Shown here one piece after another: positions 24,889 to 58,011 of a DNA stretch of 64,000 nucleotides. The stretch is from Oculina patagonica (taxonomy: Eukaryota). The notes under the pieces are model-generated. The model worked only from the letters and a program-made list of their open reading frames with translations, had not been told where the DNA came from and did not search any database. The translations under genes were made by a program, and so were the position numbers. The stretch is from assembly GCF_052425735.1 (NCBI RefSeq), contig NC_135759.1, positions 29,512,001 to 29,576,000 on the forward strand, read 5' to 3'. Position 1 is the first letter of the stretch; the number at the start of each line of letters is the position of its first letter.

Positions 24889-25822
24889 GTGTATTTACTT
24901 TCTCACTTTTCATCTCCAGATGTTGTTAACATTTATCAACAGCATTTAGGCTATAACACTACGAAAAACCAGCTACTATGGTCTGGTTCGGGCGACGTTT
25001 TGAGTAACTTTATTCGATTCATTCTGGATGAGATCGACGAATGCTCAATAACAACTGCGGAAGATCAAACTCACAATCTTATAACCTACAAAGCCAAAGA
25101 TGTGATAGTCAAATGGTATACGGCTACTAAAACTCTCCTAATTCAAGGCGCTGGACATGCAAGTTTCACAGAAATTTTTTTTCGAGTCTTCAACCTGATA
25201 CCTCAAATTGAATTACAAGATTCCATTTGCTACTTCTTATGGAGGGGATACCTTCCCATCTTCAGTTTCTATCACTACTTTTGAGGAAAATGTTTCTCCT
25301 CTGCATAAATGCAGCTGTGACTCAGTTTTAAACGAGCTAAGCTCCATGAAGAATTCCATTCCTGAGCTGTCGAAGCGAGTTGCTCAATTTTCGAACCTCG
25401 ACCCGCCGTCATTGTCTTCATCGACTGGCCAGGGCAGGGAGCATCTTTTACATTCTATCAGCGATTTAAAGAAGGAAAGTACTAGTTTAAAATCTGAACT
25501 AAGGGATCAAACTAAAGCCAACAAACTGCTTGAAATGAAAAGAGATAGCCTTTCAACAGCGCTTCGGCTTCTACAAGAAGATCAATTAAAAGCAACATCT
25601 CATGCCAAAGGTCACATCAATGCTGGCACGACGTCGCCACCTACTGAGAATATTCCTGAAACAGAATGTTTAATTATTGACTCTAATTACAATCTTGCCA
25701 ACCTTGGCTATTCTCCTGAGATCAGGTTAGGTGATACAAGTATAAAACGAGTCTACTCTGCTAAATCGCTTGGTGTTTATATTGATGATCGTTTATCATG
25801 GTCCACTCATATTAACCATGTG
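24889..25822 (+). pseudogene. Internally deleted LINE (CR1/L2-like): ORF1-like region joined to an RT C-terminal fragment
   Basis: ORF1-like LLWSG...VKWYTATKTLLIQG and a coiled coil ending RDSLSTALRLLQED, joined to IRLGDTSIKRVYSAKSLGVYIDDRLSWSTHINHV, typical of the post-RT region. Confidence 0.65.
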
Positions 25823-25845
25823 GAAAAAAGAGAGGTTGATGTTGC

Positions 25846-25955
25846 TGTAGCATTTGTTGTAAACTTAGGTCAGCGGTCTACATTGGGCGCATGCTCATGG
25901 TAATAAAACGTGTTCTGTACATCCGCCATCTTGTGTTGTGTTCCTTTACACTTCA
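25846..25955 (+). repeat. 5' LTR (110 bp)
   Basis: Matches the 3' LTR except for a 3-bp indel and one substitution; contains aataaa. Confidence 0.95.
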
Positions 25956-25973
25956 TGGTGTCAGAAGCGGGAT
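25956..25973 (+). promoter_or_regulatory. Primer binding site (tRNA-Leu-like)
   Basis: tggtgtcagaagcgggat directly follows the LTR and is complementary to a tRNA-Leu(CAA)-type 3' end (...cttctgacacca). Confidence 0.75.
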
Positions 25974-27033
25974 GGAGCACCTAAAACCGCCCGAAGCTCT
26001 CATACTGAGTGCGGCGACGAATAAAGCCGAGGCATGGCGGCGTTGGAAGATGTCCTGGGAGTTGTACAAAGTGGCAAGTGGTCTCGATAAGAAGGATGAA
26101 AAAATTCAAGTCGCCACGTTGCTCCATGTGCTTGGAAAGGAATGTGTGGAGGTCTATTCAAATTTTGTTTGGGAAGACGAAGGTGATCTTAACAAAATAG
26201 CGGTAGTGGAGGAGAAATTCAAGGCTTATTGTGCGCCATTAACATCAAGGCACTTTAATCGCCATTTGTTTGTCGAACGCAAACAGCAAGACGGCGAGAC
26301 AGTCGACGAATTTTGCAGCGCTTTGAAAACACTTGCCAAGAATTGTGATCTCGGCGACAAAGAAGAATCCTGGGTAACGATGTTAGTTCTGGGCCTCAAG
26401 GACCCGAGTGCAAAGGAGAAACTTATGGAAAGTGATCAGAATCTTGAAAGAACATTACAAGCCGCCCGTATCTCCGAAACAAGTAAACAACACATGAAGA
26501 CTTTAAAGGACGAGAGCAGCAAAGTCGAGAAAGTGGATTCAGTAGACAGTTCAGGTCGTAAGCATCAAGGTGGTATGGCGTGCAGGAACTGTGGTATTTT
26601 GCATGGGCTTGGGAGAGGTTTATGCCCTGTAGCTGGTAAACAATGCCACAAGTGTAAGAAGATGAATCATTTTGCAAGGATGTGCCAAAGCTCAGGAGGA
26701 CAAAAACAGCAGGTAAACACAGTTTATGATTTTGACTCTGACTCTGAGACTATGTTTATTGGTTCAGTCAACTCGGGGGACCAAGACTGGGTTGAAACAG
26801 TAGATTTTGGCAATGTTAAAGAGGTGTTTAAGCTAGACACTGGTGCCCAGTGTAATGTTTTGCCAAAAACTGTGTATGACAAGATCACAACTATGCCTTT
26901 GCTACCATCCTCTGCAAGACTAGAAAGTTATTCGAAGACCTCTATAGAACCAGTTGGAAAATGTGAGTTGACATGTTGTGTGCGGGGGCAGAAACATCAA
27001 GTCTTATTTCAAGTAGTAGATGGCAGTTATTAA
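25972..27033 (+). CDS. gag: Gag plus aspartic protease
   Basis: MEHLKPP...; two zinc knuckles (CRNCGILH...C, CHKCKKMNHFARMC); protease motif FKLDTGAQCN. Confidence 0.9.
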   Translation: MEHLKPPEALILSAATNKAEAWRRWKMSWELYKVASGLDKKDEKIQVATLLHVLGKECVEVYSNFVWEDEGDLNKIAVVEEKFKAYCAPLTSRHFNRHLFVERKQQDGETVDEFCSALKTLAKNCDLGDKEESWVTMLVLGLKDPSAKEKLMESDQNLERTLQAARISETSKQHMKTLKDESSKVEKVDSVDSSGRKHQGGMACRNCGILHGLGRGLCPVAGKQCHKCKKMNHFARMCQSSGGQKQQVNTVYDFDSDSETMFIGSVNSGDQDWVETVDFGNVKEVFKLDTGAQCNVLPKTVYDKITTMPLLPSSARLESYSKTSIEPVGKCELTCCVRGQKHQVLFQVVDGSY

Positions 27034-29348
27034 CTCCCCTCCTAGGTCGGGCTTCCCGTGAACAGATGGGTTTAATACAACGCATAAACACTATCAGTAG
27101 CAGAAGTATAAGGGATGAATTTCCAGACGTATTCCAAGGGCTGGGATGCCTACCCGGGAAATATCACATCAGCATTGACCCTTCTGTCTCACCTGTCATC
27201 CACCCACCCAGAAGAGTTCCTCACTCAAAACGGGACCCGTTGAAAAAAGAGCTAGACCGCATGGAAAGTGTTGGCATAATTGAGAAAGTGCCCTTAAATG
27301 AACCAGCAGATTGGGTTAGCAGTCTTGTGTGTGTTGATAAACCAGATGGGTCCATTCGGGTGTGCCTTGATCCAAGGGATCTTAACAAAGCCATTAAGAG
27401 GGAACATTACCCACTTCCATTAGTGGAAGATATCACAGCCAGTTGCGCAGGAGCTACATTGTTTTCAACCTTGGATGCTGAAAAGGCTTTCCACCAAATT
27501 CAGTTGGATGAGGAGAGTAGCAAACTTTTGACATTTAATACACCTTTCGGGAGGTATCGTTACCTGAGGATGCCAATGGGTATCAAGTCTGCCCCAGAAG
27601 TGTACCAATGCAGAATGGAGCAAGTGTTCGAAGGGCTCACAGGAGTCAAAGTTATCATGGATGACATAATTTTGCATGGAAGCAGCAAGGAAGAACATGA
27701 TACCCATCTGAGGGCTGTTTTACAGCGTGCCCGAGACAACAATCTGCGATTAAAGAAGTCCAAGTGTCATATCGAGCAGGAAGAGGTGAAGTTTCACGGG
27801 CACGTTTTCACAAAGGATGGGTTGAAGTCTGATCCAGAGAAAGTAAGAGCAGTGGTCGAGATGCCAAGGCCGGCTGACAAGGCTGGTGTTCAGAGACTGT
27901 TGGGCATGGTTAACTATGTCAGCAAGTTTATTCCAAACATGTCAGACCTTACTGCACCCCTAAGACAGCTGTTACATCAGGATGTAGAGTGGCACTGGGA
28001 AGAGCAGCACGAGGCCAGTTTCAAGAAAGTCAAGGAAGCTCTTGCTCTCTCGCCTGTGTTGGGGTACTACGATGCTAAGAAAGAGTTAACCCTCCAAGTG
28101 GATGCCAGCTCAACAGGTCTGGGTGCAGCACTGATTCAAGAAGGGCAACCCATAGCGTACGCTTCAAAGGCACTCACGCCCACCCAACAGAAGTACGCCC
28201 AAATTGAAAAAGAACTCTTGGCTGTGGTATTCGGGTGTGCGAAATTCCAAGAGTATATCGTGGGTCGTACGGTCACCATTGAAACGGATCACAAGCCTTT
28301 AGAGTCAATCATCAAAAAGCCCTTACATGCATCACCATTGCGCCTGCAAAGGATGCTCGTTCAACTCCAACGCTACCCAGAAATTAACCTGGTCTACAAG
28401 CGTGGTGTAAGTCTACATTTAGCAGATGCCCTGTCCAGAGCTCATCTGGAGGAACAGCTGACGAATGCTGAACAGTTAGATGTAAACTTAGTGGAACACA
28501 TGATCTCAGACCCACAGTTGGTCAGGTTCGTGGAAGAAACTAAAGAAGATGAAATCCTTCCTGAGCTGCAAGAAGTAATTTTGTCCGGTTGGCCAGAGTC
28601 GAGAGGTCAGGTGCCAGCAAAGCTGCAGGAGTTCTGGAATTACAGGGATGAGCTCACTGTATACCATGGGTTGGTATTGAAGGGCCAGAAGATCTTCACA
28701 CCTAAACGTCTAAGGGGAGAGATGCTAGAGAAATTACACGATGGACACTTGGGTATTGGCAAAACACTAATGAAAGCACGTGATGTCTTGTTCTGGCCAG
28801 GCATGGCTGCAGAAATAACTGAGAAAATCAAGAAGTGTCCAGTGTGTCTAGAGAATCGGCCAAGTCAGCAGTCTGAACCGCTAAAGTCACACGAGATTCC
28901 GCTACTGCCTTGGGCTAAGGTTGGCACAGACCTTCTGTACAAAAACGGTAGGAACTACCTTGTAACCATTGATTATTACTCCAAGTGGCCAGAACTGACC
29001 TTGCTTAACTCTATGACCAGCACTTCAGTCATTACAGCCTTAAAGTCTCAATTTGCAAGGTATGGTGTCCCATCAGTCGTCATGTCTGACAACGGTCCAT
29101 GTTACAGTTCTGAGGAGTTTAAGCAGTTTTCACAAGATTGGTGTTTTCAGCATGTCACATCTAGTCCTGGCTACCCACAGTCTAATGGTCAGTCAGAGAA
29201 AACGGTCCAAACCCTCAAAGCTATGCTGGAGAAGGCTGATGACCCATACAAAGCCCTTCTTTCATACAGAAATACGCCTTTGGAAGGTGTAAATTTGTCG
29301 CCAGCTCAGATGCTTATGGATAGACGTCTGAGAACCCCATCCCTGTAA
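27030..29348 (+). CDS. pol: Pol (RT, RNase H, integrase), frameshifted relative to gag-pro
   Basis: IRVCLDPRDLN, RMPMGI, IMDDII, VDASSTGLGA, ETDHKPL, LHDGHLG...CPVC, SDNGP, GYPQSNGQSE. Confidence 0.92.
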   Translation, partial: LTPLLGRASREQMGLIQRINTISSRSIRDEFPDVFQGLGCLPGKYHISIDPSVSPVIHPPRRVPHSKRDPLKKELDRMESVGIIEKVPLNEPADWVSSLVCVDKPDGSIRVCLDPRDLNKAIKREHYPLPLVEDITASCAGATLFSTLDAEKAFHQIQLDEESSKLLTFNTPFGRYRYLRMPMGIKSAPEVYQCRMEQVFEGLTGVKVIMDDIILHGSSKEEHDTHLRAVLQRARDNNLRLKKSKCHIEQEEVKFHGHVFTKDGLKSDPEKVRAVVEMPRPADKAGVQRLLGMVNYVSKFIPNMSDLTAPLRQLLHQDVEWHWEEQHEASFKKVKEALALSPVLGYYDAKKELTLQVDASSTGLGAALIQEGQPIAYASKALTPTQQKYAQIEKELLAVVFGCAKFQEYIVGRTVTIETDHKPLESIIKKPLHASPLRLQRMLVQLQRYPEINLVYKRGVSLHLADALSRAHLEEQLTNAEQLDVNLVEHMISDPQLVRFVEETKEDEILPELQEVILSGWPESRGQVPAKLQEFWNYRDELTVYHGLVLKGQKIFTPKRLRGEMLEKLHDGHLGIGKTLMKARDVLFWPGMAAEITEKIKKCPVCLENRPSQQSEPLKSHEIPLLPWAKVGTDLLYKNGRNYLVTIDYYSKWPELTLLNSMTSTSVITALKSQFARYGVPSVVMSDNGPCYSSEEFKQFSQDWCFQHVTSSPGYPQSNGQSEKTVQTLKAMLEKADDPYKALLSYRNTPLEGVNLSPAQMLMDRRLRTPSL

Positions 29349-29356
29349 CTGAGGAT

Positions 29357-29800
29357 ATGTTGAAACCCCAACTGTATGACCCTGAAGAAGTGCTCCCAAA
29401 ACTTAAGGAAAGGCAAAGAAAGCAAAAAATGCACCATGACAAGACAGCTAAGGAATTGCCACCTCTGAAGGAAGGTGAGGTTGTGAGAGTAAAGGAAGGC
29501 AGAAAGTGGAACCCGGCCAGAGTCACACAAGTTCTTCCTTCACCTAGATCCTATAAGGTGGAAACAGAGAATGGAGAGTACCGAAGAAATCGTCGGCATC
29601 TGTTAAAGACTGGAGAGTCACAAACACAAGATGTCACAACTGATGATGACCTAACCGAAACAGGATCAGAGTCAACTTCTGTTGCAGCTACCCCTGAGCA
29701 TCCTGAAACGCAACTGGTTGTAACGCCAACCACTACTACCACTCGATCTGGTAGGACAATCCGTGAGCCTGAGAGATTTAAAGACTATGTTAAGTACTAG
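29357..29800 (+). CDS. Integrase C-terminal tail, separated from pol by a frameshift
   Basis: LPPLKEGEVVRV...W.PARV...PRSYKV...YRRNRRHL...TRSGR..R.PERFKDYV, a typical Gypsy IN tail. Confidence 0.8.
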   Translation: MLKPQLYDPEEVLPKLKERQRKQKMHHDKTAKELPPLKEGEVVRVKEGRKWNPARVTQVLPSPRSYKVETENGEYRRNRRHLLKTGESQTQDVTTDDDLTETGSESTSVAATPEHPETQLVVTPTTTTTRSGRTIREPERFKDYVKY

Positions 29801-40044: not shown

Positions 40045-43000
40045 ATCCATTTGACTTTGAGATGACACCCCATGCTGACCGGAGAGTACGCCGCTTCGGC
40101 TGCATTTGAGAAACTATACGGCAAGACTAGTACAACGAGGTGGAGGAAGCAGTGCTGTGGTCTCTGAGTCGTTGGGGACGAGACCCGTCTTAGCTGAGGA
40201 GATTGCCAAAGCCTTGCAGAGAGCCATTGAAAGACATGTATTACAAGATGGTGCCGTAAGAGACACTGATCACTTATTGATCAATATAAATTCTAACAGA
40301 ATCAGACATGCCTACCATTCTAGAAGATTACTTGTCCGCGACTGGAGACAAAACACGACACAAGCCCAGGAACTGTTGGAACAAGTCAGTAACATGTTGA
40401 ACAGCAATGAAAACTTTAAAATGGACGACTCCTTCACTTTGAACATATCACACATTCAAGACCCTGGAAGGGGAGGTGACAATAGAAGGCTCAAACCGGG
40501 TTTAGCCCCGATTGAAGAAATCTTGGAGAAAAAGAAATGTGTTTTAAAGATTAGAAACACGGATGAACTGTGTTGTGCCCGCGCACTGGTAACTCTAAAA
40601 GCCAGGCTGGACTATGGCATGGATCATTGGTATTACAAGAACTTACTGAAAGGATTTCCAATACAAGAAAAGGCCGCCAAAGAACTACATCAACAAGCAG
40701 GCGTAGAGGAAGGTCCTTGTGGTTTGAAAGAAATAGAGTCTTTTCAAAGACATTTAAACCAGTATCAAATCGTTGTGGTGTCCGTACAACACGGCTACCA
40801 AATAATTTTCAAAGGCAAGGAGCAGACAGATGACAAGCGGTTGATACTCATCAAGCATCACGAACACTATCACGGCTGCACCTCCTTGGGGGGCTTCTTT
40901 GGCAAGAGCTATTACTGTACCAAATGCGAAAAGGGGTTCTCGCACAACGATGTGAAACAGCACAAATGCCCAGGTACCAAGTGTTACGCCTGTCATCAAA
41001 AATAATGTGTGGAATGGAAGAGAGACGGAGCCCTGGCCCGAGTGAACTGTACCGACTGTCATCGCCATTTCTTCGGGAGCGGGTGTTTACAATTGCACAA
41101 GCAGCGTACTGACACCGGAAAGGAGACAGACCCGAGCAAAAAGAACACTGTCTGTGACACGCACAAAAAGTGTGCAGGCTGTCACAAGACCTATGACCTT
41201 TACGAACTGAAAAACAAGCATCGCTGTGGACAAGCCGAATGTCCATCGTGCAAAAAGTACCATGACCTGAGGAAGCATCAATGTTACATTCAGAATCCCT
41301 TAAAGTTGGAGGAAGAAAGGAGAAATAGGAAGAGGACCAATGATGGTCGACCCAAAGAACCCGAGCCACCCATCTTTGTGAGCTGGGACGCAGAGGCCAG
41401 ACAAGATGAAGGCCAACACATAGCCAACCTGATTTGTGCCATGAGATCAGACACAGAACAAGAGAGAACGTTCGAGGAGGAGAACTGTGTGACAAACTTT
41501 TTACGTTGGTTGAGAACTTTGTCAGAGAGAAACCATGTGATAGCCGTGGCTCATAATTTTCAGGGCTACGATGCATACTTCATATTGGAAGAACTGTATC
41601 GTGAAGGTGTCAAGCCCGACCAGATTGTCAATGGTGCCAAGATCCTGAGCATGAGCATACCTAACATCACGTTTAAAGACAGCATGTGCTTCTTGCAGAT
41701 GCCACTCTCTTCGTTTCCAAAATCCTTCAGACTAACGGAACAGAAAAAGGGATTTTTCCCTCATTTCTTCAACACTGTGAACAATCAGAACTATGTGGGA
41801 CGGATCCCCGCCCGTGACTATTATGACCCCCAGGGGATGTCGAAAGAGAGGAAGGAGGAGTTTGATCGGTGGTATGCCGAACGATTGGCGGAAGACTACG
41901 AATTTGACTTCCAAAAGGAACTCGTGTCTTATTGCCGCTCCGATGTTAACTTGCTTCACGAAGGCTGTTAAGTCTTTAGACACGAATTCAAGACCATCGC
42001 TGGCTTTGATCCAATGGAGAAGTGCATCACGATAGCATTGGCATGTAACCGGTTTTACCGTATCAAATGTATGCCTGAGGGTAACTTGGCTTCAGAGCCC
42101 ATCCAAGGATGGCAAGGAAAAGGGCAAGCCCCACTCGCGGGTCTCGCTAGAGTGGCTGCATTTCCGAGACATGAATTCCACCCATGCGATCCAACATGCC
42201 AGAAACGGTGGATAACACGCCATACGTATAGCGGGGCGAGCCATCAACGTGGACGGTTAAAACCATGAGCACAAGACGGTCTACGAGTTCCATGGGTGCT
42301 TTTTCCATGGATGCCCAACTTGTTTCCCACACCGGGAAACGAAGCATCGTAAGATGGGTGACCGAAGCATGCGTGACGTGTACGAACAGACACAAGAGAG
42401 AAACCAGAGAATGAGACAGGCTGGTTACGTGGTAGAAGAGATGTGGGAATGCGAGTGGAACCGTCTCAAAAAGGAGGATCCGGAGGTGAAAGCATTTGTC
42501 GAATCGTTGTCGTTCAACTCCCCCTTGGAACCTAGAGACGCTTTCTTCGGAGGAAGAACCAATTCAGTACGATTATACGCCCAAAGCCGAGAGGGGGAAG
42601 AGATACGCTATGTGGACTTTACCTCCTTGTACCCCTACGTCAACAAAAACTGTGACTACTCGCAAGGCCATCCACAAGTCATTGTGGAGCCCGGACACAC
42701 TGACCTAACTGGTTACTTTGGACTGGTCAAGTGCACCGTGACGCCACCCCATGGTCTGTACAGTCCTGTCTTGCCATACCGTCAGGGAGAAAAGGTAACC
42801 TTCCCACTCTGCCGAACCTGCGTGGAAACGGAACAAAGCAAGCCATTGACGGAGCGGTCCGCCATTTGCCATCACACTCCTGAACAGCGTCAATTGACCG
42901 GTACATGGTGTTCGCCGGAAATAGAAGAGGCGGTGAAACAAGGGTACGTGGTGGAACATGTTCATGAGATATGGAACTTTGAAAAGAAATCAAATACCAT

Positions 43001-43830
43001 GTTCAAAGAGTACGTCAACACGTTTCTAAAAATGAAGCAAGAAGCCAGTGGATGGCCGTCGTGGGTTGGAGACGATCCGCTGAAAAGAGCCCAGTACGTG
43101 GAGGAATTCTATCAGCGAGAGGGGATAAGACTGGAGGCAGACAAAATTGAAAAGAATCCGGGTCGTCGCTCATTGGCAAAAATGATGCTCAACTCGTTCT
43201 GGGGAAAGTACGGTCAAAGAGGTAACAAAAGTCAAGTGGAAGCATTCACTTCCCCGGCCGAATTCTACGACCTGTTGAGAGATGACACAAGACAGATAGA
43301 TGACGTGCGAGTGATGAGTCCCGAAATGATAGAGGTCGTGCACAAAAGTAAAGAGGCCTCCGAAGAGGTGCAACCCGATATCAACATATTCGTCACCTGT
43401 TTCACTACCTGCTGGGCCAGATTGAAGCCGTACCAGGAAGGTTTGGCAGTACTGAAGCCAGAACAAATATTATACTTTGATACTGACAGTCTGATATTAG
43501 GAACAGATCCCTCATTACCCTTGGGTGATTATTTGGGTGATTTTACGAACGAATTGGATGATGGAGACCACATTGTTGAGTTCGCAGCTGCGGGACCCAA
43601 GAACTATGCCTATAAGACGAAACAGGGAAAAGTGGTATGTAAAGTACGTGGGTTTTCACTTAACGTGCACGGAGCCCATCAACTGAACTTTGATACATTG
43701 AGGGAAAACGTAATTGCGGAGGTCACATCTCCATTAGACAAACCCAGGGACATAGCAGTCTTTAATCCTCACAAGATCACCAGAGACAATAAGAACAAGA
43801 CCCTCAACAAGGAAAGTATAGTGTTTTCTG
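40045..43830 (+). pseudogene. polB: Polinton/Maverick protein-primed DNA polymerase B (OTU-like N-terminus, Zn-finger array, exonuclease, Vsr-like insert, polymerase); disrupted
   Basis: DELCCARAL...HHEHYHG; WDAEA; AHNFQGYD; FKDSMCF; KGFFPHFFN; YCRSDV; VYEFHGCFFHGCP...MWECEW; FFGGRTN; YVDFTSLYP; AKMMLNSFWGKYGQ; YFDTDS; GPKNYAY; KVRGF. Stops at ~41003, ~41969 and ~42258, a frameshift near 42125, and apparent C-terminal truncation. Confidence 0.93.
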
Positions 43831-43893
43831 AAACAACTATATACCTTTGTGGTCTTGCTAAGAGAGGAAACTCGTTATTCAGTGCGAGTGTAA

Positions 43894-44370
43894 CGCGTAG
43901 ACTTATCTGCACATGCGTTTAGTGCAAAGTATTTAGTTTCAGATACCACAAGGATAGCCTGGCAGTTTGTGAACAATATATAAAGGATGGTCGTCTTGCC
44001 AACTCTGTGAGTGAATCGCGTAGACTAATCTGCGCATGCGTTTAGTGCAAAGTAATTAGTTTCAGATACCACAAGGACAGCATGGCAGTTTGTGAACAAT
44101 ATATAAAGGATGGTCGTCTTGCTAACTCTGTGAAAGAATCGCGTAGACTAATCTGCGCATGCGTTTAGTGCAAAGTAATTAGTTTCAGATACCACAAGGA
44201 CAGCATGGCAGTTTGTGAACAATATATAAAGGATGGTCGTCTTGCTAACTCTGTGAGTGAATCGCGTAGACTAATCTGTGCATGCGTTTATACAAAGTAA
44301 TTAGTTTCAGATACCACAAGGACAGCATGGCAGTTTGTGAACAATATATAAAGGATGGTCGTCTTGCTAT
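43894..44370 (+). repeat. Tandem repeat, four 123-bp units (Polinton subterminal)
   Basis: cgcgtagac starts at 43894, 44017, 44140 and 44263. Confidence 0.95.
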
Positions 44371-44790
44371 CTCACTATGAAGTGCGAGTGTATCGCGAAT
44401 ATCGAGTATCGAATATCGATCGTTCCCAGGGACGCGCGGCCAGTAGGGTCGGCGCATGGGTCCCAGTTGTAGATCGGTATTTGTCAATAAATAAGTGATT
44501 TTAGAACTGCGCATGCGTGTTTGTTGCCTGTATACCACAAGGGGCGCCGTGTCCTGTGGCTATAGGGGACTCCGTCTCATTTGGGCTTCTTGCGACTTAG
44601 CCCCACCCTAACCTAATGATGACGTCATCTTTTCGGAGGTGACGTGAATTTGCCAAAGTCATGTGACCGGTCACGTGGTGTGACCCTTGTCACGTGTCCT
44701 ATATCCCTCCTATTGATTTGCCATAGACTCTTGGGCGCTTAAATACTGCTCTCTGATTGGTCGTGCTTTATCTAAGCGCCCCATACTACT

Positions 44791-51644: not shown

Positions 51645-53629
51645 AACCATGTATGCCATTCGCACAAATTAATGTTATTTTTAGCCTTTTATTCTTATTG
51701 TCTATTGTTTGTATGCACATATTTTTAGCGTTTTTACTATATTTACACATGTAATTTTATTCTAACACCAAACTTGAGAATGACTGTTAAATGGTTGAAA
51801 TGTCGTTCTTTATTAGCATTTACTAGTTACCGGTATATCAACTTCCAAAAACTTGTTGATTCAAAAAATATTCTTTTCAAAAAAACATTTTGTGATGACA
51901 TTTTTTTCTTTACTCCAATAAGGTTTCAACTGTGGCTCCAGACTCACCGGTTCTCGTATAGTGGGTGGTACCAGGGCCCAAGAAAACAGCTGGCCAAGGC
52001 AGGTCCCTCTTGGACATAATGGCTGGCTGACCTGTGGTGGATTTCTTATTGATGAACAATGGGTGTTGACTGCTACTCATCGTGTTTATCCTTGTGATAA
52101 TCATCGTGAATATTATGTTGTAAGGTAAGGTTTGTAAATATTCTTTTTTAAAAAAAATTCATTGAGAAATTTTTTTCTTTACTCCTATAAGGTTTCAACT
52201 GTGGTTCCAGGCTCACCGCTTCTCGTATCGTGGGTGGTACCAAGGCCCCAGAAGACAACTGGGCGTGACAGGTCACACTTGGACATAATGGCTCGCTGAC
52301 CTGTGGTGGATCTCTTATTGATGAACAATGGGTGTTGTGACTCACTCAGCGCAACATTTTTTATTTAGATTATTTTAAGGTATTTTAATATTCCTATTCT
52401 TGTCCTTTTATACGCTTTTAAAGATATCTTTGCCAACCATGTATGCCATTCGCACAAACTAATGTTATATTTAGCCATTTTTAGCCTTCTATTCTTATTG
52501 TCTATTGTTTGTATGCACCTATTTTGGCGTTTATACTATATTTACACATATAATTTTATTCTAACACCAAACTTGAGAATGTTAAATGGTCGAAACATCG
52601 TTCTTTACTAGCGTTTACTTTTATAGTTACCGGTATATCAACTTCCAAAAACTTGTTGATTTGAAAAATATTCTTTTCAAAAAAATTTTTGTGATGAAAT
52701 TTTTTTTTAACTCCTATAAGGTTTTCAACTTCCAGACTCACCGGTTCTCGTATCATGGGTGGTACCAGGGCCCAAGAAGACAGCTGGCCAAGGCAGGTCG
52801 CGCTTGGACATAATGGCTGGCTGACCTGTGGTGGATTTCTTATTGATGAACAATGGGTGTTGACTGCTACTCATTGTGTTTATCCTTGTGATAATCATCG
52901 TGAATATTATGTTGTAAGGTTAGGTTTGTAAATATTCTTTTACAAAAAAATTTTGTTGAGGAATTTTTTTCTTTACTCCTATAAGGTTTCAACTGTGGCT
53001 CCAGACTCACCGGTTCTCGTATCGTAAGTGGTACCAGGGCCCAAGAAGACAGCTGGCCAAGGCAGGTCGCGCTTGGACATAATGGCTGGCTGACCTGTGG
53101 TGGATTTCTTATTGATGAACAATGGGTGTTGACTGCTACTCATTGTGTTTATCCTTGTGATAATCATCGTGAATATGTTGTAAGGTTAGGTTTGTAATTT
53201 TATTTCACTAAACTTTAGACAGGAGTAAAAAAAATGAGTACATCTATGTAGTACATAGATATTTGTTTTTGCACTTGGATTTTTCCTTTTTATTTGATAA
53301 GAATTTAAGATTTTAAAGAAGAGCCAGAGTAAGCTTGATTGTTTGATTTTTGAGATGCCTTTTTATGACTTTTTAAGCCGAAGCTTAACAAACAAAGCGA
53401 CTCGCTAAGCTCAAAATTATTTATTTAGATTATTTTAAGGTATTTTAATATTTGTATTCTTGTCGTCTTATATATGCTTTTAATTATATCTTTTACAATC
53501 ATGTATTTCATTCGCACAAATTAATGTTTTTTAGCCATTTTTAGCCTTTTATTCTTATTGTCTATTGTTTGTATGCACATAATTATTTTTAATTAGTGCT
53601 TTTACTATATTTACACATGTAATTTTATT
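51645..53629 (+). repeat. Complex tandem array containing orphan trypsin-like exons
   Basis: Module catgta..cattcgcacaaa... starts at ~51645, ~52435 and ~53498. Exon copies at ~51922-52123, 52192-52338, 52721-52918 and 52986-53184, with a partial copy at 55862-55950. Confidence 0.85.
52986..53184 (+). pseudogene. Trypsin-like (S1A) serine protease N-terminal exon, least disrupted copy
   Basis: tataag|[57 protein letters not shown]...VVR|gt. The 52192 copy retains RIVGG and CGGSLI. Confidence 0.85.
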
Positions 53630-54131
53630 AGTAGTAAAGTAGTAATGTACTTCACTCTGGGGCAATGATCGTATGATTTTTCTTAGCCAATCAAAAACTT
53701 CACATTTTGCTACATAATTGTGAAATATTTTGTGAAACGTTATTCATTTTTTGAAATATTTTTGTGAAGATGCCTTATTCCACCAAGCAACTCGATCAAC
53801 GCTACAAAGACGTTTGTAGCAACATAGAAGATACAAGAGAGTATACTTTAAAGTTCTAATTTAAAGAGTGTTGTATCCATGTATCTTGACACTTTCTTCA
53901 AGGATCTACACAAGCAAGACCTTAAACAATGCGAGAAAAAGTTGGAGGCGATTAAAGAAGTTCTTCATAGAAAAATTGAGTCAAGGTCATCAGGCAGTCG
54001 CACGATTTCATTGACCAATCATATTACGACAAGTAAAGAAGTTTTATAAATTATTCAAGTAAATTTTACTTTAAATTTTGAATTTTACTCCCAAAGTTTA
54101 TTCTGATATTTTTGTGCTACCCTAAAGCAAT

Positions 54132-54425
54132 ATGCCCAAGTCTATTTCAACCCTGCAAGGACAAATAGCAAATTGCGAAAGAAGTATGAAGGAATCCCTT
54201 GCTATTTGTATCGATGAATTCAACAATTCAGAATATACTTTCAGTTTTAATTTACACAACTTCACAGCTACATTGCCTTCAATCAACCTGGAGGAAGCTC
54301 AAACATCGCTTACTAAAGCCATGAGTATGCTGACTGAATGTGGAAAGATGCTTACTATTATAAGAAAGAAAAGGGCATATCAGCAAGAAATTAAAGAGGT
54401 TTTGATAGCTCGCAATCGAAAATAA
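54132..54425 (+). CDS. Small helical hypothetical protein in the mini-element
   Basis: Intact 97-aa ATG ORF in a compact, intronless, virus-like gene run; no motif recognised. Confidence 0.4.
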   Translation: MPKSISTLQGQIANCERSMKESLAICIDEFNNSEYTFSFNLHNFTATLPSINLEEAQTSLTKAMSMLTECGKMLTIIRKKRAYQQEIKEVLIARNRK

Positions 54426-54443
54426 TCTATCAAACATTTAACC

Positions 54444-54635
54444 ATGGAGGCTCATTTCAACGAGAAAATAATACCATTCGCCACCACTTCAATAGCAAAT
54501 ACGGATGCCGATAAAATCACTGTTGATCCCAATCAGATCCCAACAGCTGAGGATATTGATGAGCATATTGATGTGAATGCCGATGAAATGCCTGAAGCTA
54601 TCAAGCAGGATACCAATGAAGAAGAACTTGACTGA
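54444..54635 (+). CDS. Small acidic hypothetical protein in the mini-element
   Basis: 63-aa ATG ORF in Kozak-like context (accatgg), 18 nt after the previous ORF. Confidence 0.35.
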   Translation: MEAHFNEKIIPFATTSIANTDADKITVDPNQIPTAEDIDEHIDVNADEMPEAIKQDTNEEELD

Positions 54636-54666
54636 TATAAATTTTTCTTATATAATAGTATATAAA

Positions 54667-55225
54667 ATGCATTGTAATGCTGTTATACATCAAGATTTGA
54701 TTAAATTTGATCAATATTCCTGTACAAATTGTGGTGATTTTTTAATTACTCAAGACAAAACAATCGATTCGTGTTGTAATCAACCAAATATAGTCAAGGA
54801 AAGCTATTCTCAAATTTGTTCTTATTGCGGGACTCAGAATTATGCATATGTTAGCGAGTATTTTGATTTTTAAGAGAACAGACACAAGATATGCCGTAAA
54901 AGCATCTATCATCATAAATACCACATTGAGAATGTTTAAAACGATTTATGTATTAAAAATGGAGTTGAATTGTCTCAAAATCAGCGCGATAAGATTTACA
55001 AAGTGTTTCACGAGATCGGTACAATTCTCCCATATATAAATAAAAGAAGAAAGAGGGTGATCTCAACAAGATATATTTTAAGACAGCTGTTTAAAATGCT
55101 CGGTATCCCATACAATTTCATCTGTGTTACTAAATTTAAAAAAAAACGTGAGCTTTTAATGATCAGTATTGGGCTGAGATTTTAGCATTAAAATCGGCCC
55201 AGATTGCACGGATTATTCGGTAAAT
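54667..55225 (+). pseudogene. VLTF3-like (poxvirus late transcription factor 3-like) zinc-ribbon protein, disrupted
   Basis: One frame: MHC...CTNCG...SCC...CSYCG...EYFDF*ENRHKICRKSIYHHKYHIENV*...KIYKVFHEI...RKRVISTRYILRQLFKMLGI...TKFKK, then a frameshift to DQYWAEI. Resemblance recognised from memory, not searched. Confidence 0.6.
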
Positions 55226-55704
55226 TTATCATCATACTTGAGCAGATACCGATCGATTATTGGGCCGGTATCGCATATGAAGTCGTCAGTAGTTTTCATC
55301 ATTAAAAAGATATTGGATAGTTCATATTCCCCTGTTCTTAACATGAATTTTATTGTAAATTAAGCAAGTGCTGATAGCTTTGATAAGCAAAAATTCCATT
55401 TTGAATTTTCAAATCGAGATTCTGATGCTGAAGCCAGCCTTGTATCAATAAAGCTCCCGTGCTGATTGCAATCAGGCTGATACCAACTGTTGAAATGGAC
55501 GATACTATGCCCCCCGAAGCGAATAAAATAGCCAGCCAATTGCCTATTAATTTCAGCCTTCTAAAGCTTTTTGTAGCTTGTTTATAACACCAACACTTCT
55601 TATGGTATACTCTGTAGTATTCTTTCAATTCTTGAATTTGCGCTTGATTTAACTTGTCACTAATATGGTTCCATTCGAATATATTTTTGCGTTGTTTCGG
55701 CATA
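55215..55704 (-). pseudogene. Hydrophobic hairpin (2-TM, SLATT-like topology) protein, frameshifted near 55350
   Basis: IFEWNHISDKL...ELKEYYRVYHKKCWCYKQ...LIGNWLAILFASGGIVSSISTVGISLIAISTGALLIQGW...FAYQSYQHLLN, continuing in another frame as LRTGEY...DDFICDTGPIIDRYLLKYDDKFTE*. Confidence 0.55.
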
Positions 55705-58011
55705 TATAAATATTTGTTCCAATATTTTTTCCAGCCGGCGGGCAAGTAGTGATGTACTACATCTCTGAGGCAAATTGCCCCAGAGTGTAGTACATTTACT
55801 ACTTTTATTCTAACACCAAACTTGAGAATGACTGTTGAACAGTCGAAACGTCATTCTTTACTGGCAGGTCGCGCTTGGATATAATGGCTCGCTGACCTGT
55901 GGTGGATCTCTTATTCATGAACAATGGGTGTTGACTGCTACTCATTGTGTCTTCGTGAATATGTTTGAAGGGTAATAGGTAATGTTTGAAGTGAATATTA
56001 GTGTAACTTTGCTGTTATACATAATTATTTTCCCTTTCCACTAATAAGTTTATTTAACCCTTCATTATATTTTCATTTTTTGTTGCAAAAAAGGTTTTTT
56101 TTTGGTTGCAGAAGAAATTAACTTTTACCTTCTTAATATTTCCTTAATTAATTAATTAATTAATTAATCTATTTTAGTCATTCCTTTTTAGTTTCTCATA
56201 TTTTTAAACTACATTTATTTGTTTTCCTTCTCTTTGTTTTTCTTGGTACTATGTTAATGTATTATTGTTGTATGTTATAAAAAAGGCCTTGTTGTGAAAC
56301 TCTTTTTACTCACCCTTTTACAGTGAAGGGTGTGAATGAAAGAACCATGGAAGAACCATTGGAAACCAGAGGTTTTCTGACAGTTTTGGACAGGAAGATC
56401 ACTTTCAAAATTAATATATTCAGCTGAGATGTAAGATCTTTAGAAAGAGCAAGAAGTTGTAGTGTACATTGCTCACATTGTGCGATTTTTGACAAATTAT
56501 GCAGTTTTATACAATACTACGCGCATTGTGATTGGTTGATGCCTGACACCAATAAGAGTACAGACACACAGATGATGTCACTGCGTGGTGTGACTTGGAC
56601 GCGTGTTTAGAGATCATAGTCCAAATCAGCATTTGGCAAAGTTTTTCAAAACTCGCGGGCCACAACAAAACACAAAAGTTCAGTTTGATGATCAATCTGC
56701 AACGAGAAACAATTTGCCAAGTATTGTATACCTTTCAAAATATTTAACTGGACTAAACAAGCTTGAAGTAGACAGTGAATAATTCGAGAAATCGAATGTG
56801 TCAGAGTTTGTCCATTGTTGAACAGTTGGACTACGCCACACACAAGAAATCCATGAATGGCAGTTGAACCTAACAGTAAGTTTAAAGATTGCAGATTTGA
56901 ACAACTTTCCAAATGGAATAAAGGCTATTTCATTATTCTGTTTATTTAATCGGTTTAACAGTGCTTCGTGCTTCGTAAAATGAAAACAACTTAAGCACAA
57001 TGGTAGCGGCATTGCTTACACTGAATTGTACTAAAGTCTTGTGTTAATTGTATAAAACAAATAGATTCTGTTTTGCCATGGGTCTGTTTTCTTAACATTG
57101 TAATTCATTTGTGTTGATGACTGTAGGACTAAGAACCATTTGTGTGGAAGAGTGTTTGGAAGTAAAAATACCATAATTTCACACCTTTTTGCTGCCACAA
57201 TCACCATTCATTTACTGCAGCTGTGTGCTATTTGTTATTCAAGAAGTATCTCATTTGCATTTGTAACATACATCATTGTATATAAACACTAGTTCATCTG
57301 AATAAATATTGAACAGGTCAATGCTTTGTTTGCCTCTTTGTTTTGCAGGCAAATGAAAGAACATTATCTGTTGTTGTGGATTTCCAACCTGTTTCCAATT
57401 GATATTTGGTGAGAGTAAGGCCTAGTAAGTAAGATTATGAGGAAGATGATCCAGTGCCACATACACCTTGGCTGGATGTTCTAGTCTGCAATTGTAATTG
57501 CTCGAATTTCCCACTAGCTGGAAAAGTAATTGTGGACAGATCCAGTGGCACTGATACCACAGAGCAGTTATCCTATCAGTCCAGTACTCACTTGAGTGAT
57601 GAAAGCAAATCAGAGGGGAGTGATGAGGGGCTAGATGAAGACCTAGATGGGGAAACTGCAGTCAGCAATGAAAGTGCACAGTTTACCGAGTACTTCACAT
57701 TAAAAGGAAGCAGCAACAACGAGGATGCCAGAAAACTTTACGAAAATGTAAAAGAATCTGACCCACCCAATATGCATTGCACGCTTGCATCAGTCAAATC
57801 GCCATTATTGGGACACCCGATCAGCTAGTTCGAACAACTGAGATTTGCTATTGGTTTCCATTGAGCGTTTTACACGAAAGACCGTTCTCTTTTTTTCGGA
57901 AATATTACTATTTGATCATTTATCTTTCTTTAGAAGTTTTTATTTTTTAATAGTCGCTGTTTTTCTAAGCGTTATTGGGTTTGTTTTGAACGGTCGATCT
58001 TCGCGATCGTA

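Follow-up and report, generated by a model that had tools for sequence, protein, structure and literature searches.

Within a 64,000-nt stretch of Oculina patagonica DNA (NCBI RefSeq assembly GCF_052425735.1, contig NC_135759.1, forward-strand positions 29,512,001 to 29,576,000; hereafter the window, whose own numbering is used for positions) we examined a 2.2-kb insertion at 53630-55803 that is very probably a deletion derivative, now inert, of a Polinton family common in genomes of the stony-coral type. What it preserves is its two ends, a conserved non-coding block and broken copies of two adjacent genes, one related to the giant-virus late transcription factor VLTF3 and one for a protein with two transmembrane segments (2TM). 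In full-length relatives these two genes sit side by side in the middle of the element. The position of the deletion breakpoints, and not selection for cargo, accounts for their retention in the short copy, where neither now has a functional product.

Termini and insertion site of the 2.2-kb element

Read directly, the element starts with AGTAGT and ends with ACTACT, and its junctions with host DNA run ...GTAATTTTATT / AGTAGTAAAGTAGTAATGTACTTCACTCTGGGGCAAT ... ATTGCCCCAGAGTGTAGTACATTTACTACT / TTTATTCTAACACC, the slashes marking the element edges. A repeat finder gives a terminal inverted repeat (TIR) of 23 nt at 96% identity; by eye the arms extend over 29-30 nt with one mismatch and one 1-nt indel. 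The hexamer TTTATT stands on both sides as a target-site duplication (TSD), and two paralogues of the surrounding host repeat (families D12 and D18) run through the site uninterrupted, as ...ACACAT(G/A)TAATTTTATTCTAACACC..., with a single TTTATT (Table 1). Because of these empty paralogous sites and the TSD, the insertion is real and its boundaries are exact. An initial annotation of this DNA had described the AGTAGT...ACTACT ends, TIRs of about 30 bp, a 6-bp TSD, and an empty site visible in two paralogous repeats that made the boundaries exact, and all of this stands. The terminal 30-mer has no other match in the 64-kb window, where none would be expected by chance.

The left end does not carry the inner palindrome arm found at other ends of the same Polinton family, and DNA folding detects no hairpin potential there. 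The near-palindrome at the right end is predicted to fold as a DNA hairpin of -18 kcal/mol (z -8.1).

Between the ends, open reading frames (ORFs) and profile searches reveal no polymerase, integrase or capsid gene, in agreement with the initial annotation. Neither an rve integrase nor any gene of the morphogenetic module (double-jelly-roll capsid, penton, A32 ATPase, protease) was found within the element; Rfam has no match on it. The earlier account of the content as small ORFs, a decayed VLTF3-like gene and a convergent gene for a hydrophobic hairpin is correct with one amendment, namely that the hairpin gene is frameshifted as well. By comparison with intact relatives, two in-frame stops and one frameshift disrupt the VLTF3-like gene, and a single frameshift disrupts the 2TM gene. 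We considered an alternative genetic code for the in-frame stops and rejected it, since standard stops serve both the ORFs nearby and the intact relatives, and there is a frameshift besides. The two genes converge with an overlap of 11 nt, in the same arrangement as in intact relatives.

The host DNA is of animal type, with about 38% G+C. Flanking the element are tandem exon fragments of a trypsin-like serine protease (51700-53300 and 55860-55950), in units of about 800 and 269 bp that are 82-100% identical. Insertion of the element postdates the local amplification of this protease repeat, and the filled unit lacks about 180 bp that the empty units have.

Table 1. Features of the 2.2-kb element and its insertion site (window coordinates)
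Feature	Position	Strand	Basis
Left TSD copy, TTTATT	53624-53629	.	Direct reading; single TTTATT at empty sites
Left terminus: 8-nt AGTAGTAA reiteration, then 29-nt TIR arm	53630-53666	+	Sequence reading, repeat finder
Conserved non-coding block with reiterated TTGTGAA motifs	53667-53792	.	Alignment to relatives
Lineage-specific spacer with orphan ORFs of 56, 97 and 63 aa	53793-54666	+	Homology searches
VLTF3-like zinc-ribbon transcription-factor gene, broken	54667-55223	+	Profile matches; alignment to relatives
Two-TM-hairpin protein gene (2TM), broken	55213-55703	-	ORF reading, profiles, relatives
AT-rich subterminal repeat remnant of the parent family	55709-55744	.	55709-55803 versus L003 17945-18039, 86%
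Right terminus, 59-nt near-palindrome: inner arm 55745-55774, outer TIR arm 55774-55803	55745-55803	.	Folding and alignment
Right TSD copy, TTTATT	55804-55809	.	Direct reading
Empty paralogous target site 1, in tandem trypsin-like protease repeat	51756-51761	.	Repeat comparison
Empty paralogous target site 2	52555-52560	.	Family D12; 95% identical to site 1

Shared termini and gene order in full-length relatives

We compared the element with 60 fetched loci (L001-L060), which include the closely related assembly ENA ERZ25067872; 53 of the loci are JGI metagenome contigs that are probably coral-associated, judging from the series of their sample identifiers. The 2TM/VLTF3-like pair is internal and syntenic in about 45 of the loci, and every locus long enough to judge has the 2TM gene followed, tail to tail, by an intact VLTF3-like gene of 184-192 aa. 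Upstream of the pair lie an A32-type ATPase and a long variable protein; downstream come sometimes an HNH endonuclease and then a protein-primed PolB (1133-1312 aa) and an EF-Tu-like GTPase; and far to the left, in L058 and L059, there is an integrase with rve and chromo domains together with a PLA2-like gene. Read across the full-length relatives, the order is rve-chromo integrase, PLA2-like gene, structural genes, A32-type ATPase, long variable protein, 2TM, VLTF3-like gene, HNH endonuclease where present, PolB and EF-Tu-like GTPase. These relatives are bona fide Polintons of more than 20 kb. Their 417-427-aa protein, a putative capsid protein, has no Pfam match. In intact copies both genes of the pair are under purifying selection, with median pairwise dN/dS values of 0.19 and 0.34.

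The terminus of the window element (28-29 nt) recurs at element ends in ERZ25067872, at positions 9508 and 18039 of L003 and position 975 of L004, and the L003 elements that share it carry PolB. A variant of it lies at the end of L059 (about 19903-19969), in an element with integrase, A32, PolB and GTPase, about 0.6 kb past the last called gene, which encodes 102 aa and follows PolB and the GTPase. Ends of the parent family combine the outer arm with an inverted inner copy into a palindrome of about 58 nt (L003 9451-9508 and 17982-18039), which is predicted to fold as a DNA hairpin of -18 to -22 kcal/mol (z -8 to -10), and just inside the palindrome lie short AT-rich tandem subterminal repeats.

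The genes tell of the same kinship. The best match of the 2TM gene is 93% identical over its 5' part; the pieces of the VLTF3-like gene are 35% and 53% identical to the intact 186-aa protein of L001, and over all comparisons 35-67% identical to genes of elements that carry integrase and PolB. It is hardly conceivable, then, that the insertion is some other TIR transposon with a chance AGT-type end, or an artefact of assembly. Its own want of a polymerase, integrase and capsid gene would suit such an origin, but the terminus and subterminal sequence that it has in common with the ends of PolB-carrying elements, and the identities of both internal genes to genes of integrase- and PolB-carrying elements, argue against it, and an assembly artefact is contradicted by the empty sites. 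The earlier classification of the element as Polinton-derived and non-autonomous holds, given the termini common to PolB-carrying relatives and the absence of hallmark genes of its own.

Several features of the relatives were recorded in passing. The EF-Tu-like GTPase (PF00009), to our knowledge an unusual gene for a Polinton, directly follows PolB in L003 (7676-8650 and 16697-17617), L058 (15719-16417) and L059 (18082-19005). The HNH endonuclease lies between the VLTF3-like gene and PolB in L002 (6898-7644), L003 (11938-12687) and L059 (11599-12651) and is absent in L058; such patchy occurrence is what a homing endonuclease parasitic on these elements would show. Just outside a Polinton end of L003, a 186-bp unit (18113-18298) has 28-nt inverted ends starting AGTAGTAAAGT and no clear target duplication; it may be a tiny element derived from a Polinton end. 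Contig ctg20480 of ERZ25067872 (L001/L002) contains a perfect 129-bp inverted duplication (2755-2883 versus 6443-6571) and tandem partial Polinton copies 8.6 kb apart, and that genome often has its copies rearranged.

Two deletions and their probable timing

Alignment to the relatives resolves the element into segments that are not contiguous in a full-length copy. Positions 53665-53792 and 54846-55708, the latter comprising the gene pair, align to internal positions of L001 and L058 and not to their ends, and 55709-55803 aligns to a terminus (L003). The left junction falls at the apex of the terminal palindrome, with 2 nt of microhomology, and the right junction falls in a TATATA tract directly upstream of the 2TM ATG, so that both lie at short AT microhomologies. 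Relative to the sampled full-length copies both arms are missing, about 10 kb on one side and at least 7 kb on the other. What remains is the outer 29 nt of one terminus with its 8-nt reiteration, about 95 nt of the other terminus, the gene pair and the conserved non-coding block.

We lean towards the view that the deletion came before integration. A defective short genome would have formed when strands switched at microhomologies while the parent was replicating or recombining, and would have kept the ends that the family integrase recognises; the integrase, acting in trans, would then have inserted it into the tandem trypsin-like protease repeat and produced the 6-bp TTTATT duplication, and the element would have decayed after insertion. 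Three observations favor this order of events: two separate deletions stop within 37 and 95 nt of the ends and spare both of them, one junction lies exactly at the hairpin apex, and the left terminus carries the 8-nt terminal reiteration. Terminal reiterations are produced by slide-back during protein-primed initiation, as in phi29 and adenovirus.

We think it doubtful, though well worth weighing, that a full-length Polinton was inserted, that two later and independent deletions in situ removed its arms, and that the element was never mobile at 2.2 kb. Such a history would need two large deletions that both end within 37-95 nt of the termini while sparing the ends and the TSD, and one of them must stop exactly at the palindrome apex. 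It agrees, on the other hand, with the decay of both genes, with junction microhomologies that are typical of end-joining, and with the frequency of partial deletions among integrated relatives: in related assemblies it is common to find copies that are deleted or rearranged, with PolB mostly gone from L060, an arm missing from L004 and L001/L002 rearranged. It agrees also with the occurrence of a single copy, as far as seen. The 60 loci contain no second copy built in this way, and 5.8 billion proteins include no near-identical truncated product, the host genome being outside either set; exact look-ups of the 97-aa ORF and of the 791-aa retrotransposon ORF likewise found nothing.

These same facts count against placing deletion before integration. 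End-joining in the chromosome, once the element was inserted, would be just as likely to leave junctions at microhomologies; the accessible data hold a single copy, with both genes decayed, and many relatives deleted in situ; and with neither a second mini copy nor a truncated product, mobilisation as a mini-element is not demonstrated. A further difficulty is that identity to the relatives is a mosaic. The ends are 93-99% identical to copies in ERZ25067872, and the center is 70-78% identical or has no match at all, a spacer of about 0.8 kb in the interior being without counterpart in relatives; similarity shifts from one level to the other within the membrane gene. Given this low central identity, the true parent lineage is unsampled and the gene order near its ends is assumed. 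Mosaicism is seen among intact copies as well, with 2TM proteins 94-96% identical where VLTF3 is only 67-70% identical, which argues that recombination is frequent in the family and, again, that the immediate parent lies outside the sample.

Every fetched locus of 2.5 kb or more was searched for inverted repeats on either side of the two genes, and no second mini-element emerged. Two truncated 2TM products from other assemblies (P0073 and P0076) were considered as candidates for such elements and rejected, since both lie in larger Polinton contexts.

A more far-reaching form of the deletion-first reading is that the insertion represents a defective short genome that arose naturally in an animal polintovirus, by strand switching at the terminal hairpin in the course of protein-primed replication, and was integrated at 2.2 kb. 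We consider this unlikely, and return below to what it would imply.

The two gene families, the remaining content and known systems

The piece of VLTF3-like gene in the window scores 20.1 bits against Pox_VLTF3 (PF04947; E 5.5e-4), under the 25-bit cut-off, and the zinc-ribbon pieces also match A2L-type zinc ribbons, likewise below threshold. Intact relatives give a firmer signal. PF04947 is matched by 26 of 32 of them at E<=0.01 (best E 2.6e-9), and many relatives of the gene carry a precomputed PF04947 annotation. When a model of the family (pLDDT 69.7) was compared with BFVD by Foldseek, VLTF3-like proteins of giant viruses made up about one third of the 50 matches listed and included several of the best; these matches are local (68-90 residues, root-mean-square deviation 1.6-3.5, probability up to 0.97), and every E-value exceeds 0.1. 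A search of PDB sequences with the family profile returned nothing below E 0.1. Judged by its sequence relatives, the family of the zinc-ribbon gene appears truly VLTF3-like, as the initial annotation had proposed, with the window copy by itself remaining sub-threshold. In common with VLTF3 of the Nucleocytoviricota (the poxvirus A2L-type late transcription factor) it has an N-terminal CxxC...CxxC zinc ribbon followed by a helical domain; it differs in that the relatives are short (186 aa), the structural matches are local and weak, and the window copy is a pseudogene.

The 2TM gene belongs to a large family. Of 480 candidates 471 are relatives, nearly all of 162 aa and located on ENA contigs of up to several Mb, and a full HMMER scan yields 510 clusters at 50% identity, with one cluster member in Oculina patagonica. 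Five family members share a hydrophobic stretch at about residues 50-93 (some 44 residues), and in an AlphaFold2 model of the protein helices span this stretch; the assignment as a conserved hydrophobic hairpin in a helical protein is solid. Against SLATT_1 (PF18181) the protein scores 17.2-17.5 bits (E 0.006 for the window copy), under the cut-off of 26.3 bits, and matches at E<=0.01 occur in 19 of 30 close relatives (best 3.6e-5) and in 4 of 47 distant ones. The likeness to SLATT and to 2TM effectors of the CBASS type consists of these recurrent sub-threshold matches and of a helical protein with a central Gly/Ser-rich two-TM hairpin. In contrast to SLATT proteins, the Pfam gathering score is never reached and the signal fades in distant members, and the gene is flanked in every case by the long variable protein and the VLTF3-like gene, with no SMODS- or SLOG-type nucleotide-signalling gene beside them. 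Assignment as a defence effector was rejected as unproven, PADLOC giving only a few weak '2TM effector' matches. Compared with PDB, the family profile found no sequence below E 0.1 and the 2TM model retrieved generic helical bundles only. A scan of IMG/VR viral contigs with the 2TM alignment found no relatives, and there is therefore no hint of a free virus in that collection.

The non-coding block next to the left terminus contains four copies of TTGTGAA. It shows 92-94% identity with L001, L002 and L058 and 87% with L003, against only about 48-70% for the adjoining VLTF3-like gene. Its counterparts are internal and intergenic, upstream of the VLTF3-like gene (L001 6255-6381, L003 11399-11513, L058 11204-11330). 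It may act in cis, for instance as a promoter or as an array for protein binding. A TATATA-type AT-rich motif abuts the ATG of most genes in the intact relatives L058 and L059, often after TAAC or CTAA, and both conserved genes of the window element keep it (54650-54669 and 55703-55720); the orphan ORFs of the spacer are without it. As a candidate likeness only, the motif is reminiscent of the ATG-proximal late promoters of large DNA viruses. The orphan ORFs are probably non-coding: the 97-aa ORF has no homologue among 5.8 billion proteins, tblastn of the small ORFs against 57 loci (L001-L057) produced only one 18-residue match, and none has a Pfam match above noise.

With the content laid out, the proposal of the initial annotation that the element is a satellite with selected cargo can be judged. 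It would make the insertion a member of a satellite-like mini-Polinton family under selection, whose cargo acts on late transcription of a helper or on membranes, and we regard this as quite improbable. Clean ends with a TSD, the retention of exactly two conserved genes and of a highly conserved non-coding block, the ATG-abutting motif kept by both genes and the purifying selection on both in the family at large would all be in keeping with it. Yet the two genes of this copy carry four disabling lesions between them, its small ORFs are orphans, no other mini copy was found among the loci compared, and IMG/VR viral contigs hold no relatives of the family. The pair is not acquired cargo: these are standard core-adjacent genes of the parent, a syntenic module from the middle of full-length Polintons. 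A current cargo function fails as well, both genes being disabled here.

Several systems already described bear on the deletion derivative that we favor. A VLTF3 homologue has been published for a subgroup of stony-coral polintoviruses (PMC11131425), and these share with our element AG...CT termini, TIRs and a 6-bp TSD, and with its relatives PolB, an rve integrase and an A32-type ATPase; the present copy differs in its length of 2.2 kb against more than 20 kb and in having no hallmark genes. A term search of that paper found no mention of a 2TM partner gene, an EF-Tu-like GTPase or a terminal hairpin palindrome. Non-autonomous Polinton families have been catalogued, for example Polinton-1N1_DR (PMC9341505), and internally deleted DNA transposons are known in general (PMC3014272). 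They resemble our element in keeping the ends of an autonomous parent around a deleted interior and in needing enzymes in trans; here, in contrast, no multi-copy family is demonstrated, and two deletions left a central gene pair in place of a simple end-to-end collapse. Transpovirons, linear TIR plasmids of mimiviruses of about 7 kb that derive from polinton-like viruses by gene loss (PMC5499653), are likewise reduced Polinton-like derivatives that kept TIRs and a zinc-ribbon gene and have no capsid module. They are defined, however, by a superfamily 1 (SF1) helicase fused to an inactivated PolB (PMC5499653), which ORFs and profiles show to be absent here, and our element differs further in being integrated in an animal genome with broken genes.

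The window contains other mobile elements. A Ty3/Gypsy-type retrotransposon occupies 25208-29800, with a reverse transcriptase-RNase H-integrase ORF of 791 aa. A second, unrelated Polinton is represented by its right arm (40106-44789), in which a protein-primed PolB (40106-43922) is split over three ORFs and 123-bp subterminal tandem repeats (44001-44368) precede an ACTACT end (44784-44789). That it belongs to a different family from the 2.2-kb element, as had been stated, is borne out by its different terminus and by a PolB that is 29-36% identical to PolB of the relatives. As a helper it was rejected, its terminus and PolB being too different.

Taken by itself, the 2.2-kb element is of little weight, another decayed piece of a transposon in an animal locus rich in repeats, though its exact boundaries show clearly how short the terminal sequence kept by an integrated copy of this family can be. 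It also led to a large unannotated family of 162-aa two-TM proteins, with at least 510 clusters at 50% identity, whose members in this Polinton group are always tail to tail with the VLTF3-like gene and under purifying selection. The terminal hairpin palindrome and the ATG-abutting motif are descriptive leads on how the family replicates and is transcribed. Should the insertion be a defective genome after all, it would be a fossil showing that integration in this family can require as little in cis as about 30 nt of one end and about 95 nt of the other; polintoviruses would then generate defective genomes as adenoviruses do, and the TTGTGAA block beside the terminus could be a cis-acting site and not a bystander.

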